The translations under genes were made by a program, and so were the position numbers. From Macrostomum hystrix (lineage: Eukaryota; Animalia; Platyhelminthes): a stretch of DNA of 64,000 nt. The notes beneath the pieces were generated by a model, which saw nothing but the letters and a program-made list of their open reading frames with translations, ran no database searches and was not told where the DNA came from. How positions within the stretch are numbered: position 1 is the first letter of the stretch; every line of letters starts with the position of its first letter. The stretch is from contig CATNEN010000005.1 in assembly GCA_950097015.1 (NCBI GenBank), positions 496,001 to 560,000 on the forward strand, in the 5' to 3' direction. Positions 4,149-61,400 of this stretch are shown here, one piece after another.

Positions 4149-13809
<9,661 letters not shown>

Positions 13810-15208: not shown

Positions 15209-15455
15209 CAGGCCAGCACCGGCGTCTCATACGACCGAGTCAGTGCCACGGAGTTGAGTGAGTATGGATTGAGTTGCGGGGCGCTGCCGAATCGATTACG
15301 ATATGTTGAGATTGAAAGCTGGACTCTACTGATAAGCTCCAATAAGAGCGAAACGCGTCTGGAGTTGCCTTGGTTCGAATCCTGATTTCAATTTTTTCGA
15401 TACATATCGGAATCGATTCAAACATTAGATTTTTGAAATTCAATGGGCAGTGTCC
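15209..15455 (+). mobile_element. Hammerhead-containing SINE/retrozyme-like element, degenerate copy
   Basis: Near-identical to 47309-47600 but lacks the 45-bp A-box segment and has core CTGATAA (15329-15335). Flanked on both sides by CT-rich simple repeats (15050-15208, 15456-15790). Confidence 0.85.
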
Positions 15456-16259
15456 TCTCTCCTCTCTCCTGCTCTCTCTCTCCCTCTCCCCCTCTCTCCT
15501 CTCTCCCCCTCTCTCCCCTCTCTCCCTCTCTCTCCTCTCTCCCCCTCTCTCCTCTCTCCCCTCTCTCCCCCTCTCTTCTCTCTCTCCCCTGCCACCCGTC
15601 TCTGCCGCTCCGACTCTCTCCCTCCCTATGCCACTCTCTCCCTTTCCTCTTTTCTACCTCTCTTGCTTGTTATATCTTTATCTTTTGACCCTATTTCTTC
15701 TCTAGACCCACTCGCTTCACAAATCCTATTTTTTCTCTCCCTGACTCCCGTTCATCCAACCTTACCTCAGTTGTTCCTCCCTTAGACTAGTGAGCTACTT
15801 ATCCCTAAGGGAAGCCTAAAAACTTTGTCAAGTCATTTGTTAACATGTTATAAAATATCAGCCGAAGATTTTTTGTTAGTTTATTAGAAGACGGACAGAG
15901 ACAGGCACTGTACCTGGGACAACCTAGGATTGATGGAATCCAGTTAGAGAGACAGCAACAGAAACACTGACAACTTCGACCTCCCACCAATTCAAGTTCA
16001 ACGTTCAAGTATAGATGAACTTGGGCCATTGTGTGCAACAAGGGGCATTGCTACTGACAGTCGATCTCTGTAGAAGAAAGCAACAGCGTTTTGAGGAATA
16101 AATGCAACCCTGACGAATATTCGTGGGAATTTTTCCTTTAGCCGTCTTTCTTCCTATAGGTTGCTGCTTGCGTCACAAGGCTCAGGCTAGCAGCTTCGCA
16201 AATAGCCACCCAAATGGGAAGCGTTTCATGAAGAACAAAGATGAAATTAATTGAGAGAG

Positions 16260-17115
16260 TAGGAGAAGAGTAGAAAAGCAGAGGAAAGAGAGAGGAAAAA
16301 AGGGAGAGGAAGAAAAAGGAAAAGAGGAACAAAGGGGAGAGGAAGAAAGGGAGAGAGGAAGAAAGTGGAGAGGAAGAAAAAAGGGAAAGAGGAACAAAGG
16401 GGAGAGGAAGAAAGGGGGAGAGGAAGAAAGTGGAGAGGAAGAAAAAAGGGAAAGAGGAAGAAAGGGGGAGAGGAAGAAAGTGGAGAGGAAGAAAAGGGGA
16501 GAGGAAGAAAGGGGGAAAGAGGAACATAGGTTTGAGGAACAAAGGGTAGAGGAACAAAGGGAGAGGAAGAAAGGGGAAGAGGAAGAAAAGGGAAGAGGAA
16601 GAAAAGGGGAGAGGAAGAAAGGGGGAGAGGAAGAAAGGGGGAGAGGAAGAAAGGGGGAGAGGAAGAAAAGGGGAGAGGAACAAAGGGTAGAGGAACAAAG
16701 GGAGAGGAAGAAAGGGGGAAAGAGAAACAAAGGGAGAGAGGAAGAAAGGGGAGAGGAACAAAGGGTAGACGAAGAAAGGGGAGAGGAACAAAGGGTAGAC
16801 GAAGAAAGGGGGAGAGGAAGAAAGGGGGAGAGGAAGAAAGGGGGAGAGGAAGAAAGTGGGAGAGGAAGAAGGTGGGAAAGGAAGAAAGTGGGAGAGGAAG
16901 AAAGGGGGAGAGGAAGAAAGGGGGAGAGTAAGAAAGGGGGAGAGGAAGAAAGCGGGAGAGGAAGAAAGGGGAGAGGAAGAAAGTGGGAGAGGAAGAAAGT
17001 GGGAGAGGAAGAAAGCGGGAGAGGAAGAAAGGGGAGAGGAAGAAAGGGGGAGAGGAAGAAAGGGGGAGAGGAAGAAAGCGGGAGAGGAAGAAAGTGGGAG
17101 AGGAAGAAAGGGATA
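16260..17115. repeat. GA-rich ~16-bp satellite (GAGGAAGAAAGGGGGA)
   Basis: Direct repetition; purine-only strand. Confidence 0.9.
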
Positions 17116-17622
17116 GAGGGATGGATGGCGATAGGAAGAGAGAGGTGAGCACTGAAGCGTTGAAGAAGAAGCGCAGGGGTTAAGAAAAAAATTGCCAATA
17201 TTTTGATTTTTTTAAATATTCTTTGTCAGGGCAGAACGCCAGGCAGAACAGTAGGGAGAGGGGAGAGAGGTGGAGAGAGAAATAGCTGGATTAAGAAGGC
17301 GGAGAAGAAGAAAGAGGACGCAGAAGAGGAAGATTTAGCAACGAGTCCCGCGATAGAAGATTGTAGAACTAAAACAAAACGGAAATAATTTTGCGCTAAA
17401 AATTTGGAGGATAAAAAGGGAGTATAAAAGGGATTTGGCCTCCAGTAAAGAGGACCTGAATTCAGTTCCAAAGTTATTGCTTATAGTTTTATCAATACAA
17501 TTTGGTGATCTTTTGCTTTATTCCATTGACATTTCCCCTGGCGGCTATGGCTATGGACAATAAAACTGCACCTTTAGATTTAGTGATTGGATTTTCAAAT
17601 AGTTATGGGCTACCGGGAGACA

Positions 17623-18457
17623 GGAGGGTGAGAGGGAGGTTGGGAGACAGGAGGGTGAGAGGGAGGTTGGGAGACAGGAGGGTGAGAGGGAGGTTTGGAG
17701 ACAGGAGGGTGAGAGGGAGGTTGGGAGACAGGAGGGTGAGAGGGAGGTTGGGAGACAGGAGGGTGAGAGGGAGGTTGGGAGACAGGAGGGTGAGAGGGAG
17801 GCAGGTAGACAAGGGGGTGAGAGGGTGGCAGGTAGACAAGGGGGTGAGAGGGTGGCAGGTAGACAGGAGGGTGAGATGGAGGTTGGGAGACAGGAGGGTG
17901 AGATGGAGGTTGGGAGACAAGGGGTGAGAGGGTGGCAGGTAGACAAGGGGGTGAGAGGGTGGCAGGTAGACAAGGGGGTGAGAGGGTGGCAGGTAGACAA
18001 GGGAGTGAGAGGGTGGCAGGTAGACAAGGGGGTGAGAGGGTGGCAGGTAGACAAGGGGGTGAGAGGGAGGCAGGTAGACAAGGGGGTGAGAGGGTGGCAG
18101 GTAGACAAGGGAGTGAGAGGGTGGCAGGTAGACAAGGGAGTGAGAGGGTGGCAGGTAGACAAGGGGGTGAGAGGGAGGCAGGTAGACAAGGGGGTGAGAG
18201 GGAGGCAGGTAGACAAGGGGGTGAGAGGGAGGCAGGTAGACAAGGGGGTGAGAGGGAGGCAGGTAGACAAGGGAGTGAGAGGGTGGCAGGTAGACAAGGG
18301 AGTGAGAGGGTGGCAGGTAGACATGGGGGTGGGAGGGTGGCAGGTAGACAAGGGGGTGAGAGGGTGGCAGGTAGACAAGGGGGTGAGAGGGTGGCAGGTA
18401 GACAAGGGGGTGAGAGGGTGGCAGGTAGACAAGGGGGTGAGAGGGAGGCAGGTAGAT
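17623..18457. repeat. 27-bp G-rich minisatellite (CAGGTAGACAAGGGGGTGAGAGGGTGG / GGGAGACAGGAGGGTGAGAGGGAGGTT)
   Basis: Tandem units; two variant sub-arrays grade into each other. Confidence 0.9.
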
Positions 18458-18961
18458 AATGCACACAGATTAGGCCCAAAAAGAGTGAGGAAAGCTATAG
18501 TGAGAGTCAGAGAGAGCGAAAACACGGGGCACACTGGGAACCGAACTACAGCCAGATCTCTGTATATTTGATTCCTACACTGGCATGTATACACACTCAC
18601 TATACAGCCGCTATTATACTGGGGGCACATGAAAATCAGGTAAACAATTCCCTAGTCGTAGCACAGATTTTTGAAGCATGCATCACAAAACCTAGCCCAC
18701 TCATTCTACCACTCTCTCTCTCTGCAGTGTTTTGTCGTTTACTCTGATTTTTTACCGTATTCAATCAACGCGCCGCACAAACACACACACACACGGACAC
18801 ACAGAAAGATTGATGAACGAATTATATTTGGTCCTGTGGTTTTTGAATGAATTGTAAAGCTGTAGTGGTAGATTGGCACAGTTACATGTAAGATATTGTA
18901 CAGCTACATCCCAAATTATCGTTAATTTTACACTTATCTGTGTCCCCGAGTTTAAGAGAAT

Positions 18962-19582
18962 AAACAGAATAGGAGAATCAACAGAATAGGAGAATCAACA
19001 GAATAGTAGAATGAACAGAATAGGAGAATGAACAGAATAGTAGAATGAACAGAATAGGAGAATGAACAGAATAGGAGAATGAACAGAATAGGAGAATGAA
19101 CAGAATAGGAGAATCAACAGAATAGGAGAATCAACAGAATAGTAGAATGAACAGAATAGGAGAATGAACAGAATAGGAGAATGAACAGAATAGGAGAATG
19201 AACAGAATAGGAGAATCAACAGAATAGGAGAATCAACAGAATAGGAGAATGAACAGAATAGGAGAATGAACAGAATAGGAGAATGAACAGAATAGGAGAA
19301 TGAACACCATAGGAGAATGAACAGAATAGGAGAATGAACAGAATAGGAGAATGAACAGAATAGGAGAATCAACAGAATAGGAGAATCAACAGAATAGTAG
19401 AATGAACAGAATAGGAGAATGAACAGAATAGGAGAATGAACAGAATAGGAGAATGAACAGAATAGGAGAATCAACAGAATAGGAGAATCAACAGAATAGG
19501 AGAATGAACAGAATAGGAGAATGAACAGAATAGGAGAATGAACAGAATAGGAGAATGAACAGAATAGGAGAATGAACAGAAT
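18962..19582. repeat. 17-bp minisatellite (AACAGAATAGGAGAATG)
   Basis: Direct repetition. Confidence 0.9.
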
Positions 19583-20076
19583 GCTTTCATTCTTTTGAGC
19601 TATCCTTGAAGCATCAGGACTATTTCCGTAGCTCTCCTAGAAGACCAACAGTGACTCGGGGAAACCAGTACTATTACTCAAGCTTAAACAAGCAGATGTG
19701 CTGAAGGTGCTACAGAATATTGTTTTAGAGGCAATGGGCAGTGAGCCGACATGCGAAAGCTTTGACGTGTTCCTTCCTGAAGGACCGGGCTACCGACTGC
19801 AAAGGCGGGGTCAGGGAATGAGGTGTCAGTATTAATTTAGCTTCTCACTGTCTGTCTTGCCTAAATCCTTCACCCAGTCAGTGTCACAAAGGCTTGCGTT
19901 GCATGCAGTGCATAAAAAAAGAAACATAGAATTACATTTTTGTCTTCGGACACACGAATAACCAATATGCAGCCAAGTGAAAACATGTCATGTGTTGTTT
20001 TCTACCCGAAAGATAATGGGGATTATTCTGAGCATCATCTGGCTGAGTACTGAAATTTTTAAATTTCTTAGAAATG

Positions 20077-22250
20077 TTACACGGGAGAGATAATACACGC
20101 GGGAGAGATGAGACATGGGAGAGATGAGACACGGGAGAGATGAGACACGGGAGAGATGAGACACGGGAGAGATGAGACACGGGAGAGATGAGACACGGGA
20201 GAGATGAGACACGGGAGAGATGAGACACGGGAGAGATGAGACACGGGAGAGATGAGACACGGGAGAGATGAGACACGGGAGAGATGAGACACGGGAGAGA
20301 TGAGACACGGGAGAGATGAGACACGGGAGAGATGAGACACGGGAGAGATGAGACACGGGAGAGATGAGACACGGCAGAGATGAGACACGGGAGAGATGAG
20401 ACACGGGAGAGATGAGACACGGGAGAGATGAGACACGGGAGAGATGAGACACGGGAGAGACGAGACACGGGAGAGATGAGACACGGGAGAGATGAGACAC
20501 TGGAGAGATGAGACAGTGGAGAGATGAGACACGGGAGAGATGAGACACGGGAGAGATGAGACACGGGAGAGATGAGACACGGGAGAGATGAGACACGGGA
20601 GAGATGAGACACGGGAGAGATGAGACACGGGAGAGATGAGACACGGGAGAGATGAGACACGGGAGAGATGAGACACGGGAGAGATGAGACACGGGAGAGA
20701 TGAGACACGGGAGAGATGAGACACGGGAGAGATGAGACACGGGAGAGATGAGACACGGGAGAGATGAGACACGGGAGAGATGAGACACGGGAGAGATGAG
20801 ACACGGGTGAGATTAGACACGGGAGAGATGAGACACGGGAGAGATGAGACACGGGAGAGATGAGACACGGGAGAGATGAGACACGGGAGAGATGAGACAC
20901 GGGAGAGATGAGACACGGGAGAGATGAGACACGGGAGAGATGAGACACGGCAGAGATGAGACACGGGAGAGATGAGACACGGGTGAGATTAGACACGGGA
21001 GAGATGAGACACGGGAGAGATGAGACACGGGAGAGATGAGACACGGGAGAGATGAGACACGGGAGAGATGAGACACGGGAGAGATGAGACACGGGAGAGA
21101 TTAGACACGGGAGAGATGAGACACGGGAGAGATGAGACACGGGAGAGATGAGACACGGGAGAGATGAGACACGGGAGAGATGAGACACGGGAGAGATGAG
21201 ACACGGGAGAGATGAGACACGGGAGAGATGAGACACGGGAGAGATGAGACACGGGTGAGATGAGACACGGGAGAGATGAGACACGGGAGAGATGAGACAC
21301 GGGAGAGATGAGACACGGGAGAGATGAGACACGGGAGAGATGAGACACGGGAGAGATGAGACACGGGAGAGATGAGACACGGGAGAGATGAGACACGGGA
21401 GAGATGAGACACGGGAGAGATGAGACACGGGAGAGATGAGACACGGGAGAGATGAGACACGGGAGAGATGAGACACGGGAGAGATGAGACACGGGAGAGA
21501 TGAGACACGGGAGAGATGAGACACGGGAGAGATGAGACACGGGAGAGATGAGACACGGGAGAGATGAGACACGGGAGAGATGAGACACGGGTGAGATGAG
21601 ACACGGGAGAGATGAGACACGGGAGAGATGAGACACGGGTGAGATGAGACACGGGAGAGATGAGACACGGGAGAGATGAGACACGGGAGAGATGAGACAC
21701 GGGAGAGATGAGACACGGGAGAGATGAGACACGGGAGAGATGAGACACGGGAGAGATGAGACACGGGAGAGATGAGACACGGGAGAGATGAGACACGGGA
21801 GAGATGAGACACGGGAGAGATGAGACACGGGAGAGATGAGACACGGGAGAGATGAGACACGGGAGAGATGAGACACGGGAGAGATGAGACACGGGAGAGA
21901 TGAGACACGGGAGAGATGAGACACGGGAGAGATGAGACACGGGAGAGATGAGACACGGGAGAGATGAGACACGGGAGAGATGAGACACGGGAGAGATGAG
22001 ACACGGGAGAGATGAGACACGGGAGAGATGAGACACGGGAGAGATGAGACACGGGAGAGATGAGACACGGGAGAGATGAGACACGGGAGAGATGAGACAC
22101 GGGAGAGATGAGACACGGGAGAGATGAGACACGGGAGAGATGAGACACGGGAGAGATGAGACACGGGAGAGATGAGACACGGGAGAGATGAGACACGGGA
22201 GAGATGAGACACGGGAGAGATGAGACACGGGAGAGATGAGACACGGGAGA
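20077..22250. repeat. 16-bp minisatellite (ACACGGGAGAGATGAG), about 2.2 kb
   Basis: Near-perfect array; source of the SHLSRVSSLPCLISPV ORFs. Confidence 0.95.
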
Positions 22251-24444
22251 ACCAAGTCTGAAACGGATTAATCATTATCTATCAACGTTTTTCTTACGAA
22301 TTTTCTTTTTACTTAAAAATCCAATGAGAAAATATCAAGTAAAAATAAATTCGATATTTTACAAATCAAAATGTCTTGGATTACGCAAAAAATAATCACA
22401 ATAAAATGATTCTTCGAGTTGCGAAGGTGCGAATGTTTTGTTAGGTGAGCTGAATTGCGCTTTAGGGTAATTTACAGTGATGATGTTGTTTAAGTGTTCC
22501 GCGCAACACTGATTTAGGCGCGGAAAAGCGATGACGGTATGGACAGAATTCTAGTCGCAAAGAGAAGGACCTTATCCCATATAATTATACATACAAATTC
22601 TATAACCTGAAGATTCGTGAATGGCGTTAGAGCGACCGACCGAATCGCGTGTGTACGCTTCTTATAGGGGCTTTTTATCCCAGGATTATAATCCCAGCAG
22701 TATGGCTGAGCCGCAAAAGGCCTTCTTGAAGAAGTCTCTGAGAGATGGAAAGCAGATGAAGCAGACGAGGGACAAGCAGATTAACCAACTGCATGCTTTG
22801 GTTACTAAGAGGATAAAAGGGGCTCGGGAAATTCTCCTCGACCGACAGCTATTAGCTCGCTTAAAATATTTTAAGAATCTTTTGAAATATTCAATCAGAT
22901 TTAGAAAATACATGCAGCTAATAATATATATTTATATTGATTCGCTTCGATTTGGCCCAGTTACTCGTACATTTCTTTTGTTGACAGTTTAAATGTTTAA
23001 TTATTATTTTAAACTGATGTTATTTAATTTAATTAATGTTAAATTTTTCATTATTTTTGTTTTTTTTACTTTTATTTTTGTAATTGTTTCGTTTGTGTTT
23101 AAAGTTGCTTGTAATTTTATTTGAATTTTAACAAAAAGTGACTTGTAAAAAACATCTTTTTTGGTCCAAAATTTCATATGCAATTATTTTTATAAAGCAT
23201 AATATTAGCTTTTTGCTTAAATTTAATAAAAACTTCCTCTCGCCTTTTGTCGCTAACGTAATGATTTTATTCAGCATTGAACGAATTTAAATTTTTCAAT
23301 AAGTCAATATAGAACATTTAACTTCGTATTCTTGAGTCTATTCTCAATCGTATTAGAAAAGCCTGACATTTGACGATTAATTCTTAGCCTTGTGTCTCTC
23401 TCCCCCCAGCGACTTAATTTTGTTATTTCCTTAAATCAGAATAATTATGGCATTATGGCAGCATGAGGATTGTATATAAAGCCGGAAGATAATCATAATG
23501 GATAGGAGAGGTGAATATGTGACTCATTGTCGTGAGAATGTCGGGGTTGAGAATGTGCGAAGTAATAAACTAGCAGAGCTTTAATTTCGGTCGTTCATTC
23601 AGAATTTCCGGTTTGGCCAAAGCTACGTCCTTAAGACTCAATTGAGAATATTGGCTTTATAAATAGCTATATAGATCAAGCGCTTTGTTGTTGACAAATG
23701 AAAAATGCCAGATTTTAAGCGTCGAATAATTTGGCTAGATAGATTTGAAAAAACAGGGATTCTGGAAGATATGACGTACGGGAATAGAAAAACATGCAGT
23801 GATTTTGGGTGTAAGGATATTTGTCATTCTGATGGACCTTTTTTAGATTTTTTTAAAAGATGCTTGGAATTAAATTCTCCTAGCTCTACAATTCACCCCG
23901 GAACAAGGCAGATAAAAATATAATCCGCAAATAGGGATGATTTTTTTCTGGAATCTTAAACCTTTTTTTGAAGAAAAAAATTAGTATTTTCTAGTTAATA
24001 GATGACATGCAGGACCTAAAGTGAAAAATGAGATTCTTAGAAGCCTAGCGTGGCTCAAATTAACACGCCAGATAGATTTAGCAACAGTCTGTATTCAGTC
24101 TAAAATTTCTCGCATATGCCCGAGCATTGAAGCTGGAAAATGGTGCAGATTTTTCTTCTTCATCTTTTTTTAATCTGCCCTGATCTCAAAATTTTACTTA
24201 TCTTCAAATACGTTCGGCAGTGCGGAAATTAAAGAATTGGCGCGCGACCTGGACTGTCTCTCCTAGGCTTCGCTATGCTGCATATCCCATATAGAAATTT
24301 TACAATGAAAAATGTCAGGGCTAGCTAGACTCTGAAAAGCTTTCCAGGAAATTACTTTTCCAATAGACAAAACATGAGCAAATAGACAAAGGATTTTAGA
24401 CACGTTAAGGCTAGTTCGTAATAATTTACCATAGTATAGACAAG

Positions 24445-44690: not shown

Positions 44691-45158
44691 CCCCTGACTG
44701 TTTTCCTACTATTCGTCATTTTGCTAAGAAACAAGCCAACATAAGGCATTAAAAAAATTCGAAAAAGCCTTCAAGCAACTAGATGGGAGATCAGGAAAGT
44801 AGAGAAGGCGCATGCCCGCGCGGGTCGGACCTTGTGGTTCTGAAATGTCATTTATTACCGGTTCCTGCATTTACCAAGTTCGTCCAACCGGACTCCTATC
44901 TTTCTCCCCCTTTCGACTCCGCATGGAACCGAATTTTCTGGGAATTCAATTATGTCTATGGCTTCCCTAATAGCCTCTTCGTAGACTAATAAATTCTTTT
45001 TTTATTGTCCCAATCCCTTTTAGTTCCAGTCAAAAGGATTCTTTGCCTTCAATTCTTTGCCTTCTGTCTTTCAATTTCAACTGTTCTCCCTTTATTCGTC
45101 AGTTCGCCATTGTGCGTGCCTGCAGTCGAACTATTTGATATTGACTAATGACGAAATG

Positions 45159-45930
45159 TTAATCCCTTCACTCCCATTCTCACAATCATAGAGTGTTAAT
45201 CCCTTCACTCCCATTCTCACAATCATAGAGTGCTAATCCCTTCACTCCCATTCTCACAATCATAGAGTGTTAATCCCTTCACTCCCATTCTCACAATCAT
45301 AGAGTGTTAATCCCTTCACTCCCATTCTCACAATCATAGAGTGTTAATCCCTTCACTCCCATTCTCACAATCATAGAGTGTTAATCCCTTCACTCCCATT
45401 CTCACAATCATAGAGTGTTAATCCCTTCACTCCCATTCTCACAATCATAGAGTGTTAATCCCTTCACTCCCATTCTCAAAATCATAGAGTGTTAATCCAT
45501 TCACTCCCATTCTCACAATCATAGAGTGTTAATCCCTTCACTCCCATTCTCACAATCATAGAGTGTTAATCCCTTCACTCCCATTCTCACAATCATAGAG
45601 TGTTAATCCATTCACTCCCATTCTCACAATCATAGAGTTTTAATCCCTTCACTCCCATTCTCACAATCATAGAGTGTCAATCCCTTCACTCCCATTCTCA
45701 CAATCATAGAGTGTTAATCCCTTCACTCCCATTCTCACAATCATAGAGTGTTAATCCCTTCACTCCCATTCTCACAATCATAGAGTGTTAATCCCTTCAC
45801 TCCCATTCTCACAATCATAGAGTGTTAATCCCTTCACTCCCATTCTCACAATCATAGAGTGTTAATCTCTTCACTCCCATTCTCACAATCATAGAGTAGT
45901 AATCTCTTCACTCCCATTCTCCCAATCTCC
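45159..45930. repeat. 37-bp minisatellite (TGTTAATCCCTTCACTCCCATTCTCACAATCATAGAG)
   Basis: About 21 near-perfect copies. Confidence 0.95.
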
Positions 45931-46401
45931 CAACTCTCATTCTGTGCTTCTTTCACTTTTTCATTTCCAATCTATTTTCAAGCCATATCACTCTATTCCC
46001 CACCGTTTTCCAGTTTCATTCAATGCGAAATGGGCACAATTATCTTTGAAAACTGCATGCACCACCTGGGTCTGGAATCGCAAAGCTGAATTGATTGCAC
46101 CTACTGAAGTAGACCATATTTCAATTCTATTCCTGAAATTGGCCAACGAAAAATAACTTATTTCTTTATTATGATTCAACACCTGCTATCAATTTTCCTG
46201 TCTGGAGTTCCGTGAGGCGGGCAAAGGAAATGAAAGATTTCCATACGATTAGCCTGGAAATAAGCAATTAATTATTTTTGTACTAAAGACAGTTTCTTTG
46301 AGAGGGCTTTCGTTTGCATATTATCTGCCCTTATGGTCTTTCTTTAAAACATTCTCTCTGCTTTCTTCACCTCTAACATTGCCTCTGCTCTTACTCCACC
46401 A

Positions 46402-47308
46402 TTAACTCCCTCTCTCCCTCTCCCCTCTCCCTCTCCCCTCTCTTCTTATCTCCCTCTCTCCCCTCTCCCTCTCCCCTCTCCCCTCTCTTCTTATCTCCCT
46501 CTCTCCCCTCTCCCTCTCTCCCCTCTCCCTATCCCCTCTCTTCTTATCTCCCTCTCTCCCCACTCCCTCTCCCCCTCTCTTCTTATCTCCCTCTCTCCCC
46601 ACTCCCTCTCCCTCTCCCCCTCTCTTCTTATCTCCCTCTCTCCCCTCTCCCCTCTCTTCTTATCTCCCTCTCTCCCCTCTCCCTCTCCCTCTCCCCCTCT
46701 CTTCTTATCTCCCTCTCTCCCCTCTCCCTCTCCCTCTCCCCTCTCTTCTTATCTCCCTCTCTCCCCACTCCCTTTCCCTCTCCCCTCTCTTCTTATCTCC
46801 CTCTCTCCCCTCTCCCTCTCCCTCTCCCCTCTCTTCTTATCTCCCTCTCTCCCCACTCCCTTTCCCTCTCCCCTCTCTTCTTATCTCCCTCTCTCCCCTC
46901 TCCCCTCTCTTCTTATCTCCCTCTCTCCCCTCTCCCTCTCCCTCTCCCCCTCTCTTCTTATCTCCCTCTCTCCCCTCTCCCTCTCCCTCTCCCCTCTCTT
47001 CTTATCTCCCTCTCTCCCCTCTCCCTCTCCCTCTCTCTTCTTATCTCCCCCTCTCTCTCCCCTCTCTTCCTCTCTTCTTATCTCCCTTTCTCCCCTCTCC
47101 CTCTCTCTCCTCTCCCTCTCTCCCCTCTCCCTCTCTCCCCTCTCCCTCTCTCCCCTCTCCCTCTCTCTCCTCTCCCTCTCTCCCCTCTCCCTCTCTCCCC
47201 TCTCCCTCTCTCCCCTCTCCCTCTCTCCCCTCTCCCTCTCCCCCTCTCTTCTTATCTCCCTCTCTCCTCTCTCTTCCTCTCTTCTTATCTCCCTCTCTCC
47301 CTCTATCT
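46402..47308. repeat. CT-rich satellite (CTCTCTTCTTATCTCCCTCTCTCCCCTCTCC), left flank of the hammerhead element
   Basis: Polypyrimidine tandem array. Confidence 0.9.
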
Positions 47309-47600
47309 CAGGCCAGCACCGGCGTCTCGTACGACCGAGTCAGTGTCACGGAGTTGAGTGAGTATGGATTGAGTTGCGGGGCGCGGCCGAATCGATTACG
47401 ATATGTTGAGATTGAAAGCTGGATTTAAACAAGCGCCAATAGCCTAATGGCTAAAGCGCTAGACTAGACTCTACTGATGAGCTCCAAAAAGAGCGAAACG
47501 CGTCTGGAGTTGCCTTGGTTCGAATCCTGATTTCCATTTTTTCGATACATATCGGAATCGATTCAAACATTAGATTTTTGAAATTCAATGGGCAGTGTCC
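47309..47600 (+). mobile_element. Hammerhead-containing tRNA-derived SINE/retrozyme-like element, intact copy
   Basis: Second copy at 15209-15455; A box 47440-47450, hammerhead 47468-47510, B box 47517-47527, T6 at 47537-47542, 18-bp inverted repeats 47389-47406 / 47547-47564. Confidence 0.85.
47468..47510 (+). ncRNA. Minimal type-I hammerhead ribozyme
   Basis: Helix I ACTCTA/TGGAGT (6 bp, one G-U); core CTGATGA (47474-47480); helix II GCTC-CAAAAA-GAGC; GAAA (47495-47498); helix III reduced to one A-U pair around a palindromic CGCG loop; predicted cleavage after GTC (47504). Confidence 0.9.
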
Positions 47601-50600
47601 TCTCTCCTCTCTCCCGCTCTCTCTCTCCCTCTCTCCCTCTCCCTCTCTCCCTCTCCCTCTCTCCCCTCTATCCCCCTCTCTCCCTCTCTCCCTCTCTCCC
47701 TCTCTTCTTATCTCCCTCTCTCCCCTCTTCCCTCTCTCCCTCTCTTCTTATCTCCCTCTCTCCCCTCTCCCTCTCTCCCTCTCTTCTTATCTCCCTCTCT
47801 CCCCTCTCCCTCTCTCCCTCTCTTCTTATCTCCCTCTCTCCCCTCTCCCTCTCTCCCTCTCTTCTTATCTCCCTCTCTCCCTCTCTTCCTCTCTTCTTAT
47901 CTCCCTCTCTCCCCTTCTCCCTCTCTCCCTCTCTTCTTATCTCCCTCTCTCCCCTTCTCCCTCTCTCCCTCTCTTCTTATCTCCCTCTCTCCCCTCTCCC
48001 TCTCTCCCTCTCTTCTTATCTCCCTCTCTCCCCCTCTCCCTCTCTCCCTCTCTTCTTATCTCCCTCTCTCCCCTCTCCCTCTCTCCCTCTCTTCTTATCT
48101 CCCTCTCTCCCTCTCTTCCTCTCTTCTTATCTCCCTCTCTCCCCTTCTCCCTCTCTCCCTCTCTTCTTATCTCCCTCTCTCCCCTTCTCCCTCTCTCCCT
48201 CTCTTCTTATCTCCCTCTCTCCCCTCTTCCCTCTCTCCCTCTCTTCTTATCTCCCTCTCTCCTCTCTCCCTCTCTCCCTCTCTTCTTATCTCCCTCTCTC
48301 CCCTCTCCCTCTCTCCCTCTCTTCTTATCTCCCTCTCTCCCCTCTCCCTCTCTTCTTGTCTTCCTCTCTCCCTATCTCTCCCCCTCTCCCTCTCTCCCTC
48401 TCCCTCTCTCCCTCTCTTCTTATCTCCCTCTCTCCCTCTCTTCCTCTCTTCTTATCTCCCTCTCTCCCCTTCTCCCTCTCTCCCTCTCTTCTTATCTCCC
48501 TCTCTCCCCTCTCCCTCTCTCCCTCTATCCCTCTCTTCTTATCTCCCTCTCTCCCCTCTTCCCTCTCTCCCTCTCTTCTTATCTCCCTCTCTCCTCTCTC
48601 CCTCTCTCCCTCTCTTCTTATCTCCCTCTCTCCCCTTCTCCCTCTCTCCCTCTCTTCTTATCTCCCTCTCTCCCCTCTCCCTCTCTCCCTCTATCCCTCT
48701 CTTCTTATCTCCCTCTCTCCCCTCTTCCCTCTCTCCCTCTCTTCTTATCTCCCTCTCTCCTCTCTCCCTCTCTCCCTCTCTTCTTATCTCCCTCTCTCCC
48801 CTCTCCCTCTCTCCCCTCTATCCCCCTCTCTCCCTCTCTCCCTCTCTCCCTCTCTTCTTATCTCCCTCTCTCCCCTCTTCCCTCTCTCCCTCTCTTCTTA
48901 TCTCCCTCTCTCCCCTCTCCCTCTCTCCCTCTCTTCTTATCTCCCTCTCTCCCCTCTCCCTCTCTCCCTCTCTTCTTATCTCCCTCTCTCCCTCTCCCTC
49001 TCTCCCTCTCCCTCTCTCCCCTCTATCCCCCTCTCTCCCTCTCTCCCTCTCTCCCTCTCTTCTTACCTCCCTCTCTCCTCTCTCCCTCTCTCCCTCTCTT
49101 CTTATCTCCCTCTCTCCCCTCTCCCTCTCTCCCTCTCTTCTTATCTCCCTCTCTCCCCTCTCCCTCTCTTCTTATCTCCCTCTCTCCCCTCTCCCTCTCT
49201 TCTTGTCTTCCTCTCTCCCTATCTCTCCCCCTCTCCCTCTCTCTGACCCTCTCCCTCTCTCCCTCTCCCTCTCTCCCTCTCTTCTTATCTCCCTCTCTCC
49301 CCTCTCCCTCTCTCCCTCTCTTCTTATCTCCCTCTCTCCCTCTCTTCCTCTCTTCTTATCTCCCTCTCTCCCCTTCTCCCTCTCTCCCTCTCTTCTTATC
49401 TCCCTCTCTCCCCTCTTCCCTCTCTCCCTCTCTTCTTATCTCCCTCTCTCCTCTCTCCCTCTCTCCCTCTCTTCTTATCTCCCTCTCTCCCCTCTCCCTC
49501 TCTCCCCTCTATCCCCCTCTCTCCCTCTCTCCCTCTCTCCCTCTCTTCTTATCTCCCTCTCTCCCCTCTTCCCTCTCTCCCTCTCTTCTTATCTCCCTCT
49601 CTCCCCTCTCCCTCTCTCCCTCTCTTCTTATCTCCCTCTCTCCCCTCTCCCTCTCTCCCTCTCTTCTTATCTCCCTCTCTCCCTCTCCCTCTCTCCCTCT
49701 CCCTCTCTCCCCTCTATCCCCCTCTCTCCCTCTCTCCCTCTCTCCCTCTCTTCTTACCTCCCTCTCTCCTCTCTCCCTCTCTCCCTCTCTTCTTATCTCC
49801 CTCTCTCCCCTCTCCCTCTCTCCCTCTCTTCTTATCTCCCTCTCTCCCCTCTCCCTCTCTTCTTATCTCCCTCTCTCCCCTCTCCCTCTCTTCTTGTCTT
49901 CCTCTCTCCCTATCTCTCCCCCTCTCCCTCTCTCTGACCCTCTCCCTCTCTCCCTCTCCCTCTCTCCCTCTCTTCTTATCTCCCTCTCTCCCCTCTCCCT
50001 CTCTCCCTCTCTTCTTATCTCCCTCTCTCCCTCTCTTCCTCTCTTCTTATCTCCCTCTCTCCCCTTCTCCCTCTCTCCCTCTCTTCTTATCTCCCTCTCT
50101 CCCCTTCTCCCTCTCTCCCTCTCTTCTTATCTCCCTCTCTCCCCTCTCCCTCTCTCCCTCTCTTCTTATCTCCCTCTCTCCCCTCTCCCTCTCTCCCTCT
50201 CTTCTTATCTCCCTCTCTCCCTCTCTTCCTCTTTTCTTATCTCCCTCTCTCCCCTTCTCCCTCTCTCCCTCTCTTCTTATCTCCCTCTCTCCCCTTCTCC
50301 CTCTCTCCCTCTCTTCTTATCTCCCTCTCTCCCCTCTTCCCTCTCTCCCTCTCTTCTTATCTCCCTCTCTCCTCTCTCCCTCTCTCCCTCTCTTCTTATC
50401 TCCCTCTCTCCCCTCTCCCTCTCTCCCTCTCTTCTTATCTCCCTCTCTCCCCTCTCCCTCTCTTCTTGTCTTCCTCTCTCCCTATCTCTCCCCCTCTCCC
50501 TCTCTCCCTCTCCCTCTCTCCCTCTCTTCTTATCTCCCTCTCTCCCTCTCTTCCTCTCTTCTTATCTCCCTCTCTCCCCTTCTCCCTCTCTCCCTCTCTT

Positions 50601-52100
50601 CTTATCTCCCTCTCTCCCCTCTCCCTCTCTCCCTCTATCCCTCTCTTCTTATCTCCCTCTCTCCCCTCTTCCCTCTCTCCCTCTCTTCTTATCTCCCTCT
50701 CTCCCCTCTCCCTCTCTCCCTCTCTTCTTATCTCCCTCTCTCCTCTCTCCCTCTCTCCCTCTCTTCTTATCTCCCTCTCTCCCTCTCCCTCTCTCCCTCT
50801 CCCTCTCTCCCCTCTATCCCCCTCTCTCCCTCTCTCCCTCTCTCCCTCTCTTCTTATCTCCCTCTCTCCCCTCTTCCCTCTCTCCCTCTCTTCTTATCTC
50901 CCTCTCTCCCCTCTCCCTCTCTCCCTCTCTTCTTATCTCCCTCTCTCCTCTCTCCCTCTCTTCTTGTCTTCCTCTCTCCCCTCTATCCCCCTCTCTCCCT
51001 CTCTCCCTCTCTCCCTCTCTTCTTATCTCCCTCTCTCCCCTCTCCCTCTCTCCCTCTCTTCTTATCTCCCTCTCTCCCCTCTCCCTCTCTCCCTCTCTTC
51101 TTATCTCCCTCTCTCCCCTCTCCCTCTCTCCCTCTCTTCTTATCTCCCTCTCTCCCCTCTCCCTCTCTCCCTCTCTTCTTATCTCCCTCTCTCCCCTCTC
51201 CCTCTCTCCCTCTCTTCTTATCTCCCTCTCTCCCTCTCTTCCTCTCTTCTTATCTCCCTCTCTCCCCTTCTCCCTCTCTCCCTCTCTTCTTATCTCCCTC
51301 TCTCCCCTTCTCCCTCTCTCCCTCTCTTCTTATCTCCCTCTCTCCCCTCTTCCCTCTCTCCCTCTCTTCTTATCTCCCTCTCTCCTCTCTCCCTCTCTCC
51401 CTCTCTTCTTATCTCCCTCTCTCCCCTCTCCCTCTCTCCCTCTCTTCTTATCTCCCTCTCTCCCCTCTCCCTCTCTTCTTGTCTTCCTCTCTCCCTATCT
51501 CTCCCCCTCTCCCTCTCTCCCTCTCCCTCTCTCCCTCTCTTCTTATCTCCCTCTCTCCCTCTCTTCCTCTCTTCTTATCTCCCTCTCTCCCCTTCTCCCT
51601 CTCTCCCTCTCTTCTTATCTCCCTCTCTCCCCTCTCCCTCTCTCCCTCTATCCCTCTCTTCTTATCTCCCTCTCTCCCCTCTTCCCTCTCTCCCTCTCTT
51701 CTTATCTCCCTCTCTCCCCTCTCCCTCTCTCCCTCTCTTCTTATCTCCCTCTCTCCTCTCTCCCTCTCTCCCTCTCTTCTTATCTCCCTCTCTCCCTCTC
51801 CCTCTCTCCCTCTCCCTCTCTCCCCTCTATCCCCCTCTCTCCCTCTCTCCCTCTCTCCCTCTCTTCTTATCTCCCTCTCTCCCCTCTTCCCTCTCTCCCT
51901 CTCTTCTTATCTCCCTCTCTCCCCTCTCCCTCTCTCCCTCTCTTCTTATCTCCCTCTCTCCTCTCTCCCTCTCTTCTTGTCTTCCTCTCTCCCTATCTCT
52001 CCCCCTCTCCCTCTCTCTGACCCTCTCCCTCTCTCCCTCTTACTCTCTTCCTCTTACTCTCTTCCTTTCTCCATCTGTGCAACCTCTCACCCTCACTCTC
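47601..52100. repeat. CT-rich satellite, about 4.5 kb, right flank of the hammerhead element
   Basis: Same unit as 46402-47308 with higher-order repeats; source of the 1501-aa L/S/P ORF. Confidence 0.95.
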
Positions 52101-52749
52101 TCTCTCGCTCTGTTTCTCTCCACCTTTAATCTTACTCTACCTTCCTCAATAAACTTCTAATCCCGTTCAGCTGTCTCTATTCTGTCACGAAGTATTTAAC
52201 AATTGCAAGCACTTTTGCTATACTGTTCAATCGTCATTAACCCTAAACCAAGGCACAACGAAAATCGGCAGTGTTTATCTACGTGCCAATTCAATCTTGT
52301 CGGTGAATTTTTTCAATATCATTGGTCAGACTACGACAAAAACAAACCGTTCCAACTTCAGTACCATTTCATAACGGAGTTATAATTTTCAGTTGGATAG
52401 CTTTATTGTTTGGTACATTTGCTCGCTTATTTTCTATCGCAAGTCACGTCCAGACTAATGCAGCAGCTTTTGCTGTCTTTTTCTCTTAACATATTGGATG
52501 TCCGATATATTGCTTAACTGAGGCTGATGATTTCAGAAAAAATAATTTTACCCCATTTTTATGTATTAAATGTCAATAAGCCTACGCTATCGTTTTTATA
52601 ATGTTTTCTCTCTGGGTTTATATATTTAAAACACTGCCGAGATAATGATGGTTTCCGAGAATTCCTTTGGTGACGAAATAATTTGTTTATTTAGGAATTG
52701 TCGGGACTTGTCGGGTTTAGTTGACAAGCTCAACTGGAATTGGTGGAAT

Positions 52750-57910: not shown

Positions 57911-58447
57911 ATGCAAGCCGCCGCTCCGAGGCTGCTAACCTGCGGCCAACGACTGTCAAGAAGCCTGACTGCTTCGCAGCGTTGGCTAGCTGCAACACCG
58001 CGGCCATTTCACTATCAGGATGTGCTGGAGATGACCAAACCAGCTGATAGCGACACTCCATATAAGAAGCTAACAACAGACTATGTGTGCACTAGCGAAC
58101 ATCTCGGCAAGAAGATTCTACACGTTGATGGCAAAGCTCTGACTTTGCTAGCCCAGACTGCCATGGTGGACATAGCGCACCTATTGCGGCCTGGTCACCT
58201 GCAGTCTCTATCTAATATATTGAAAGATCCTGAAGCTTCTAAGAATGATAAATTTGTCGCTCTAGAATTGTTAAAGAATGCTAACATCGCTGCTAACATG
58301 GTCCTGCCGGGTTGTCAGGATACTGGCACAGCTATCGTTATTGGCAAGAAGGGTCAGTACGTTATGACGCATTGCGCCGACGATGCTAGCGCTCTTAGCC
58401 AGGGTGTCTACAATACCTATACTGGAACTAGTCTGCGTTATTCTCAG
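57911..58447 (+). CDS. fumA: Class I fumarase exon 1
   Basis: ATG at 57911; Arg/Ser/Leu-rich, acid-free N-terminus; ends CAG|gtgagt. Confidence 0.95.
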
Positions 58448-61400
58448 GTGAGTCATGGTAGCTAATTAAATATGCCAGCAATTGAACTGAAAGAAAACAC
58501 TGCACTTCCATACATTAATGAGGATAGATTATCAAAAAATCTTCTTTGTTAACAATCGACGAATCTCGTGGGTAATGATCGACGAATCTCGTGGGTAATG
58601 ATCGAGGATTGTCCTGATAAATGTTAAATGAAATTCGTGAGAGATGATCGACGAATCTCGTAGGTAATGATCGACGAATATCTAGGTATTGATCGACGAA
58701 TCTATAGGGTATTGATCGACTAATCTCTAGGTATTTATCGACGAATCTCTAGGTATTTATCGACGAATCTCTTGGTATTTATCGACTAATCTCTGGGTAT
58801 TGCTCGACGAATCTCTGGGTAATGATCGACGAATCTCGTAGGTAATGATCGACGAATCTCGTAGGTAATGATCGACGAATATCTAGGTATTGATCGACGA
58901 ATCTCTTGGTATTGATCGACGAATCTATAGGGTATTGATCGACGAATCTCTTGGTATTGATCGACGAATCTAAAGGGTATTGATCGACGAAACTCTAGGT
59001 ATTTATCGACGAATCTCTTGGTATTTATCGACGAATCTCTTGGTATTTATCGACTAATCTCTGGGTATTGATCGACGAATCTCTTGGTATTGATCGACGA
59101 ATCTATAGGGTATTGATCGACGAATCTCTAAGTATTGATCGACGAATCTCTAGGTATTGATCGAGGATTCTTCTGATAAATGTTAGATGAAATTCGTGAG
59201 TAATGATCGTCGAGTCTCGTGTATGATGATAGACTAATCTCGTGGGTAAAGACAGACGAGTCTCGTGATGATGATCGACGAATCTTCTAGTTAAGGATCG
59301 ACGAATCTAGTTAGTGATAATTACGAATCTCGTAAGTGATGATGATCAACGAATTTCTTAGATAATTATCGACGAATCTCTTAGGTTTTTAATCGCCGAG
59401 TCTTGTGGGTAAAAATAGACGAATCTTGTAGGTGATCTTTAATTTGTGCAAAAAACTTGCAGTTTTTTATCTACCCGTACTTCATTATTTAAACGGCAGG
59501 TTGCACCGCTAGATATGTACGAAGAGAAGAACACTGGCACTAATCTGCCAGCTCAAATTGAGCTCTATTCAACGCCCGGCCGAGAATACAAATTCTTATT
59601 CATGGCCAAAGGCGGCGGATCTGCTAATAAAACCTTCCTCTATCAGCAGACTAAATCTGTGCTCAATCCTGAGAAGCTGTTGAAATTTGTCGACGAAAAA
59701 ATTCGCACTCTGGGCACAGCCGCCTGTCCGCCCTATCACCTGGCCGTAGTGATTGGCGGCACTTCAGCCGAGGCCTGCCTAAAAACTGTCAAACTGGCAT
59801 CCGCCCGCTATTTGGACAATCTGCACAGCAGCGGCAATGAGCACGGCAGAGCGTTCCGGGATCGCGACTTCGAAGAGAAAGTTCTAGCTCTGACTAGGCA
59901 GTGCGGCATTGGGGCTCAGTTTGGCGGCAAATATTTCTGTCACGATGTGCGAGTGATTCGAATGCCGAGGCACGGAGCTTCGTGTCCGATTGGTGAGCCG
60001 CTGTTTAAACTGGATGAAACCAGTTTCGACTGGATTGATATGGAATTGATATTGATATGCAATGCGATTTTTAGAAGTTCAGAGCCTGATACCCCCGCTT
60101 CGGAATATTTTCAGTAGGATATCTCAATTTCGGAATCTCTTCGGTGGGATATTCTAGTTTCGGAACTTTTTTCGGTAGGATATCCGAATTTCGGAATCTT
60201 TTCGGTAGGATCCGAGTTTCGAAATATTTTCAGTGGAATATCAGAATTTCGGAAACATTCGGTAGGATATACGAGTTTTTTTAATCTTTTCGGTAGGATA
60301 TCTGAGTTTCGGAGTTTTTTCGGAGGAAATCAGAATTTCGGAATCTTTCGGTAGGATATCCGAGTTTCGGAATATTTTCAGTGGAATATCAGAATTTCAG
60401 AAACTTTTCGGTAGGATATACGAGTTTTGGAATATTTTCGTTAGGATATCCGAATTTCGGAATCTCGGTGGGATATCCGATTTTCGGAAGCTTTTCAGTG
60501 GAGTATCTGAGTTTCGGAAACTTTTCAGTGGAATATCTGAGTTTGCTAAAAAGTGAAAATTCGCATTGTTTGTTGCCATGCAGGCATCGGCGTGTCCTGC
60601 TCGGCTGATCGGCAGGCTTTGGGAAAAATCACCGAGTCAGGCGTCTACCTGGAACAGTTGGAAACTGATCCCAGCAAATACCTGCCGGAGGTGCGAGAAG
60701 ACGACCTAGGCGGAGAAGTTGTCAAAATCGACCTCAATCAGCCGATGGATAAGGTGCTGTCGTTGCTAGGCAAATATCCGGTCCGAACTCGCCTGTCGCT
60801 CAGCGGCACCCTCGTTGTGGCCAGAGACATTGCTCACGCCAAGCTCAAAGAGCGCTTGGACTCAGGCGAAGGCCTGCCGCAGTACATCAAAGATCATCCG
60901 GTTTATTATGCTGGCCCGGCCAAGACCCCGGATGGCTATGCTAGCGGCTCGTTTGGCCCCACCACGGCTGGTCGAATGGACTCCTATGTGGACCAGTTCC
61001 AGGTGAGCTGTAAATCAATTAGTGTGAATTGGTGACTGTGAATTGATAAGCGTGAGTTGGTAAGTGTGAATTGACAAGCCTGAATTGGTGAGTGAGAATT
61101 GACAAGCGTGAGTTGGTGAGTATGAATTGACAAGCGTGAGTTGGTGAGTGTGAATGGACAAGCGTGAATTGGTGAGTGAGAATTGACAAGCGTGAGTTGC
61201 TGAGTGAGAATTGACAAGCGTGAATTGGTGAGTGAGAATTGACAAGCGTGAGTTGGTGAGTGTTAATTGGTGAGTGTGAATTGGTGATGTTGTACCGGTC
61301 GTCCTGCTAACAATGAGGATCCGGCGGACTCCAATATGAAGTCCAAGAATATCAGGTAGTGTAGTAGTAGCGCTGCCACCAGGGCGTCAGGACTTCTGCC

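Follow-up and report, generated by a model that had tools for sequence, protein, structure and literature searches.

The sequence at 47310-47641 of the 64-kb stretch of Macrostomum hystrix DNA analysed here (the window) is, with a probability of about 0.6, a solitary and almost complete representative of a retroelement that is present in many copies, non-coding, non-autonomous and associated with microsatellites. The element would belong to the same kind as Sm-alpha and the animal retrozymes and would be inserted by target priming. Read from its 5' end, the unit would comprise a 5' domain of about 120 nt, a rod closed by an 18-nt inverted repeat, and a CT-rich simple-repeat tail. The tip of the rod would be a tRNA-gene remnant, consisting of an A box, a B box/T-loop and a T run, with a type-I hammerhead ribozyme of the canonical animal form at the position of the anticodon loop. 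The features of the unit and of its surroundings are as follows.

46402-52111 (+): CT-rich satellite of 5.7 kb that hosts the studied copy (Tandem Repeats Finder: period 8, 722 copies)
47310-47598 (+): body of the repeat unit, 289 nt, GC 46%, delimited by end-to-end alignment with the copy at 15210-15453
47311-47388 (+): 5' domain, predicted as a separate hairpin in the minimum-free-energy fold and conserved in the second copy
47389-47406 (+): left arm of the 18-nt inverted repeat, 94% complementary to the right arm
47433-47466 (+): tRNA-gene-like 5' half with the A box; weak alignment to the tRNA model, folds alone as a 4+5 bp hairpin
47440-47450 (+): A box TAGCCTAATGG, a match to the consensus
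47467-47511 (+): type-I hammerhead, matched by Rfam HH9, with all core positions present and a predicted cut at 47504/47505
47498-47503 (+): palindrome ACGCGU in place of helix III, whose loop is absent; dimer interface, read from the sequence
47517-47527 (+): B box/T-loop GGTTCGAATCC, an exact 11-nt match found in the window only in the two copies of the element
47537-47542 (+): T6 run resembling a Pol III terminator, read from the sequence, 56 nt before the end of the body and kept in the second copy
47547-47564 (+): right arm of the inverted repeat, pairing with the left arm
47599-47641 (+): CT-rich 3' tail of the unit, sharing 41 of 43 letters with the sequence that flanks the second copy and continuing in the same way in a DNA contig
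15210-15453 (+): degenerate second copy of the unit with the same ends and the same CT-rich tail

The hammerhead is complete in its core. Helix I pairs 47467-47473 with 47505-47511 over 7 bp, including two G-U pairs, and is followed by the core sequence CUGAUGA (47474-47480), helix II GCUC/GAGC (47481-47484 and 47491-47494) with the loop CAAAAA, and GAAA at 47495-47498. The signature CUGANGA...GAAA, a residue other than G at position 17, the G10.1-C11.1 pair closing helix II and a helix I with open ends, which together define a type-I hammerhead core, are all found. C17 corresponds to 47504, and the cut is therefore predicted between 47504 and 47505. The initial annotation had recognised a complete minimal type-I hammerhead with a palindromic helix III that would cut after nt 47504; our reading agrees on both counts, and every letter string it quoted was found where it had been placed. 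It had also proposed a comparison with the Rfam hammerhead models. The model HH9 aligned over its full length (1-77) to 47456-47527 with 36.6 bits and an E-value of 6.7e-8 in a 321-nt search, yet this is below the gathering score of 52. A scan of the whole 64-kb window at the Rfam gathering thresholds returned no match, and the hammerhead is visible only when the scan is made by E-value. The low score is due to the lack of a loop on helix III and to the divergence of helix I in its outer part. Hammerhead_HH9, an amniote intronic ribozyme, shares the type-I topology and is identical in consensus over the 26 nt from CUGAUGA to GAAAC, which cover the core, helix II and loop 2. It differs in residing in a conserved intron, whereas the M. 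hystrix ribozyme is part of a repeat and has a bare palindrome as helix III.

Since helix III is replaced by this palindrome, a single copy is unable to close its own three-way junction. In the predicted structures, the domain-swapped double hammerhead formed by two copies reaches -28.1 kcal/mol (within 0.5 of the dimer minimum) vs. 2 x -10.0 kcal/mol for two monomers, and is thus better by about 8 kcal/mol. Being of the animal type, in which helix III is a palindrome, the hammerhead is likely to act as a dimer, in agreement with the published behaviour of most animal type-I hammerheads (PMC4209133). The transcript of a solitary copy would thus require a partner RNA.

The ribozyme and its surroundings belong to a repeat with fixed ends. 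Aligned from end to end with the body at 47310-47598, the second copy shows six mismatches outside a single 45-nt gap. The CT-rich tails of the two copies have in common an out-of-phase GC, which would be unexpected in a plain microsatellite; the tail therefore belongs to the unit, whose total length is about 332 nt. Upstream of the tRNA-like part, the conserved unit extends for another 123 nt, as seen in the second copy and likewise in contigs of DNA runs. The compact gene of about 110 nt that had been proposed from the sequence thus turned out to be the middle of a fixed-end repeat of about 330 bp, with a second copy and a very high word depth in DNA contigs. The body is largely self-paired in its predicted fold (-93 kcal/mol, z -2.8), in which the 18-nt inverted repeat closes a rod-like domain around the tRNA-like part and the ribozyme, the latter near the rod tip, and in which the B box pairs with 47421-47430. 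No Rfam match was found for the 5' domain (47311-47388).

The second copy lacks 47422-47466, i.e. the A-box half, within 2 nt on either side owing to GA microhomology that bounds the gap. It retains the T6 run and also a further T5 run of the body (47573-47577). In the hammerhead core, G8 is replaced by A (CTGATAAG), and an A in loop 2 is replaced by T; judged from the change at G8, the ribozyme core of the second copy is dead. The 45-nt deletion is probably private to this copy, as it is absent from the variants listed in the DNA contigs. The two copies are 32 kb apart, each of them solitary within the window, and their unique flanks are unrelated, so that they represent separate insertions. 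A segmental duplication was considered as the origin of the pair and rejected, as no similarity was found beyond the element and its CT-rich flanks.

The element is located in repeat-rich intergenic DNA outside the recognised exons. The CT-rich satellite around the studied copy is broken only by the element, and with respect to the CT-rich strand, the two copies of the window point in the same direction. No target-site duplication is readable at the borders, the flanks being microsatellite DNA. A reverse transcriptase gene was not found among the ten non-repetitive ORFs of the window that were tested, which yielded only KH and fumarase domains. The corresponding exons are a KH-domain exon at 5162-5617 (-) and an exon of a class I (Fe-S) fumarate hydratase at 57911-58465 (+). 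The window also contains two satellites with a purine/pyrimidine asymmetry in opposite orientation, one GA-rich on the plus strand (16000-22300, GC skew +0.7) and one CT-rich (46400-52100, GC skew down to -0.99); within the window, the hammerhead element was found only in CT-oriented arrays. Just upstream of the CT-rich satellite lies an unrelated 37-bp tandem repeat (45157-45927, 20.8 copies, 97% matches).

A search with the element itself listed no RNA run; sequencing runs were found by means of the fumarase exon and then compared with the element. In the contigs of one DNA run (X1), which may derive from the source organism, the unit is covered at a word depth of 3,000-47,000, a range that is uncalibrated as a copy number and indicates that the hammerhead-bearing repeat is a very abundant family. 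The depth profile is not a simple ramp rising towards the 3' end. Instead, it peaks at 47490-47530, across the 3' half of the ribozyme and the B box, where it is 3-10 times that of the rest of the unit and reaches 25,000-47,000 over the B-box stretch. This suggests that several families share the ribozyme/B-box module, beyond what truncation alone would produce. Several contigs switch to unrelated sequence just before 47496-47501, one of them with another T-loop-like sequence (GGGGTTCGATTCCC), and these joins hint at further repeat families built on the ribozyme/T-arm module.

Between the studied copy and the majority letters of the contigs, 7 of 289 positions differ (47346, 47427, 47438, 47454, 47463, 47535, and 47565). 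None of these lies in the ribozyme or the B box, indicating that the copy is fairly young and that its ribozyme is of the majority type. In the high-depth contigs of the same run, no variant letter reaches 10% of the depth between 47464 and 47534. Loose contig ends reveal other copies in which CT-rich DNA directly precedes 47352 or 47490; these are 5'-truncated copies in CT-rich targets. Joints that would indicate permuted or circular forms were not found in any contig examined. Two RNA-type runs from a near-identical organism (0.74-0.82 of the words of the exon) contained no contig of the element, which is a weak negative result, as contigs and poly-A libraries miss small and circular RNAs.

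The surroundings of the ribozyme resemble a tRNA gene in layout. A composite of an A box, 45-75 nt, a B box, 5-25 nt and TTTT has one match in the 64 kb and none in 100 shuffles. That the ribozyme is enclosed by an A box and a B box and followed by a T6 run had already been described in the initial annotation and is borne out by this count; the combination of boxes and T run around the ribozyme is not due to chance. The resemblance does not go much further. Against the tRNA-like part, the tRNA covariance model scored 14.5 bits (E 3, gathering score 29) and placed a 37-nt ribozyme insertion in the anticodon loop, so that the ribozyme does not, as had been proposed, take the place of the variable arm. 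ARAGORN called no tRNA in the whole window, with or without its intron option, and none in 432 in-silico excisions of the ribozyme at the default or the 90% threshold; calls at thresholds of 80% or below were mutually inconsistent and were dismissed as not credible. In the would-be acceptor stem, 4 of 7 positions are paired, and in the T stem 3 of 5. A likeness to tRNA-Ser, as had been suggested, is thus not supported even after excision. The proposed switch between a tRNA fold and a ribozyme fold also finds no support in the energies, since the cloverleaf-like pairing amounts to +6.1 kcal/mol vs. -23.7 kcal/mol for the hammerhead with the 5' hairpin, which makes it about 30 kcal/mol worse. 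The unit is therefore only weakly tRNA-like, with the likeness limited to what remains of a decayed tRNA-gene layout of boxes, T-loop and terminator, and the case for tRNA ancestry is made by short consensus boxes, the tRNA model scoring only 14.5 bits.

The position of the boxes also sets the unit apart from a typical SINE. They lie 123 nt inside the unit, and the T6 run precedes the end of the body by 56 nt, and thus a Pol III transcript cannot template the whole unit. A SINE would carry its Pol III promoter at the 5' end and would be free of internal Pol III terminators, whereas the M. hystrix unit has a conserved stretch upstream of the boxes and both the T6 and the T5 run within its body. 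The simple-repeat 3' tail, the 5' truncation, and the dispersed copies are features that it does share with SINEs.

Target-primed reverse transcription into microsatellites is consistent with the fixed ends and the simple-repeat tail, as well as with the 5' truncations and with an orientation that does not change relative to the CT-rich strand. We thus favour a model in which copies would be inserted by this route into microsatellites rich in CT, where the tail of the unit would pair with the target, and in which the reverse transcriptase would be borrowed from a Penelope-like element or a LINE. A microsatellite insertion bias is documented for Penelope-like elements. The hammerhead would cut only when two copies pair via ACGCGU, either in tandem transcripts or as two RNAs in trans. 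The boxes may be a relic of the founding tRNA gene or, at most, the promoter of a short Pol III transcript of about 110 nt.

The unit could alternatively have spread as a classical animal retrozyme, for which the transcript of a tandem array would be cut at each hammerhead and the monomer, circularised by RtcB, would serve as the template, leaving the present locus as a solo remnant. By definition, animal non-LTR retrozymes are tandemly repeated and are expressed in the form of circular RNA; they co-occur with Penelope-like elements (PMC7229834, Cervera and de la Pena 2020). The M. hystrix unit resembles them in several respects: their units are non-coding, 170-400 nt long and below 50% in GC content, contain a canonical type-I hammerhead and give a strongly self-paired RNA, and the size (289-332 nt), GC content (46%) and self-pairing (z -2.8) observed here fit this published description. 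The dimer-type helix III would also suit tandem transcripts. However, neither copy in the 64-kb window is part of a dimer or multimer, and in contrast to the tandem and circular retrozymes, both are solitary, with fixed rather than permuted ends followed by the simple-repeat CT-rich tail. Back-joints occur in no contig, and the 5'-truncated copies point to a linear template. We therefore regard a spread by this route as unlikely. Furthermore, tRNA-type boxes, which are present in the M. hystrix unit, are not mentioned for animal retrozymes in PMC7229834.

Two further readings concern the tRNA-like part, and both appear quite improbable to us. According to the initial annotation, each copy would be a Pol III mini-gene whose product, a tRNA-like RNA of about 110 nt, cleaves itself and switches between two folds. 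The A box, the B box and the T6 run are indeed ordered and spaced as in a tRNA gene, with the T run where such a gene terminates. This view is contradicted by the large energy difference between cloverleaf and hammerhead folds, by the lack of a tRNA call whether or not the ribozyme is excised, by the embedding of the 110 nt in a longer conserved unit and, weakly, by the absence of an element contig from the two RNA-type runs. Conversely, the hammerhead may be real and the tRNA likeness accidental, with the 5' hairpin and GGTTCGAATCC as peripheral structure of a rod-like RNA. The low score of the tRNA model and the null result of ARAGORN are in line with this possibility, as are the A-box stretch, which forms a perfect 5-bp hairpin instead of a D arm, and the pairing of the B box with another part of the unit in the minimum-energy fold. 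An accident of this kind is difficult to reconcile with an exact 11-nt B box and an A-box consensus at tRNA-gene spacing, with a T6 run directly behind the putative acceptor end, and with a composite that the shuffles never reproduced; moreover, the known relatives (Sm-alpha) are tRNA-derived.

Among known systems, Sm-alpha and Sj-alpha, ribozyme-bearing, tRNA-derived and SINE-like repeats known in blood flukes since 1998 (PMC2770079), are similar to the target-primed element proposed here. These Schistosoma repeats are likewise high-copy and non-coding, measure about 330 bp, and combine a tRNA-derived part with a Pol III promoter and a canonical type-I hammerhead. In Sm-alpha, the tRNA part is recognisable: tRNAscan-SE called more than 2,300 copies as tRNA-Gln(TTG), and more than 1,000 of these were classed as intact. 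In contrast, no tRNA is callable in the M. hystrix unit, and the ribozyme is located between the boxes. The tRNA-like part of the M. hystrix unit begins 123 nt inside it and not at its 5' end. The comparison with Sm-alpha is one of published descriptions.

Minimal hammerheads of Penelope-like elements (PMC4209133, Cervera and de la Pena 2014) are also of type I, with a palindromic helix III and a proposed dimeric action. They differ in having a long helix II (about 6 bp) and in residing in the pseudo-LTRs of reverse transcriptase-encoding elements, whereas the M. hystrix hammerhead has a canonical 4-bp helix II with the loop CAAAAA and no reverse transcriptase gene nearby. Cassandra and Helenus (PMC10886601), which contain 5S- or tRNA-like units, provide a parallel for a Pol III promoter and terminator that are placed inside a non-autonomous retroelement and not at its 5' end. 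These elements have LTRs, a primer-binding site and a polypurine tract and lack a ribozyme; the M. hystrix unit is without LTRs.

A scan of metagenomes for hammerhead cores with a B box downstream yielded eight loci, none of them with the animal helix II. None of the six that were scanned against Rfam matched at an E-value of 0.01, the other two being sequence duplicates. These loci were treated as chance occurrences and rejected as relatives of the element. Two near-identical loci (metagenome contigs L005, 913-971, and L008, 887-945) combine a tRNA-like 5' stretch, CUGAUGA...GAAAC and a good T arm; in L005, Rfam recognises neither a hammerhead nor a tRNA, and the combination is probably due to chance.

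In the initial annotation, the arrangement was not known to have been described. Novelty does not apply to ribozyme-bearing tRNA-derived repeats as such, which are known from the blood flukes, but full-text searches yielded no description of a hammerhead nested between the A and B boxes, even if Sm-alpha may share this layout. Thus, the ribozyme between the boxes, in a tRNA-like unit that is buried as a whole inside a larger element, may be new. The window newly contributes a copy from which the A-box half is deleted, a CT-rich tail common to both copies, the location within a satellite, and the argument that Pol III cannot template the whole element.

Whether the nesting between the boxes is itself functional is doubtful, although two routes are conceivable. 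Along one of them, transcription by Pol III from the boxes would yield large amounts of an RNA of about 110 nt, essentially a hammerhead framed by a tRNA scaffold. This RNA would pair via ACGCGU with longer transcripts of the family or with itself to form an active double hammerhead. If true, this would remove the problem that solitary copies cannot cut themselves and would represent a natural counterpart of engineered tRNA-embedded ribozymes. Along the other, the cut in the anticodon loop would create tRNA-half-like ends (2',3'-cyclic phosphate and 5'-OH) on a tRNA-like body, and the RNA would thereby become a substrate that the tRNA-splicing ligase could rejoin or circularise.

Repeats that carry ribozymes abound in many animal genomes, and little is known of how the RNAs of these repeats are produced and how dimer-only hammerheads find their partners. 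If the boxes are only a relic, the M. hystrix locus is one more copy of a common repeat. Nevertheless, a ribozyme inside a tRNA-gene-type promoter and terminator is a concrete candidate source of short ribozyme RNA, and a box-nested family of this kind would link the tRNA-derived Pol III repeat Sm-alpha of the blood flukes with the retrozymes of other animals.
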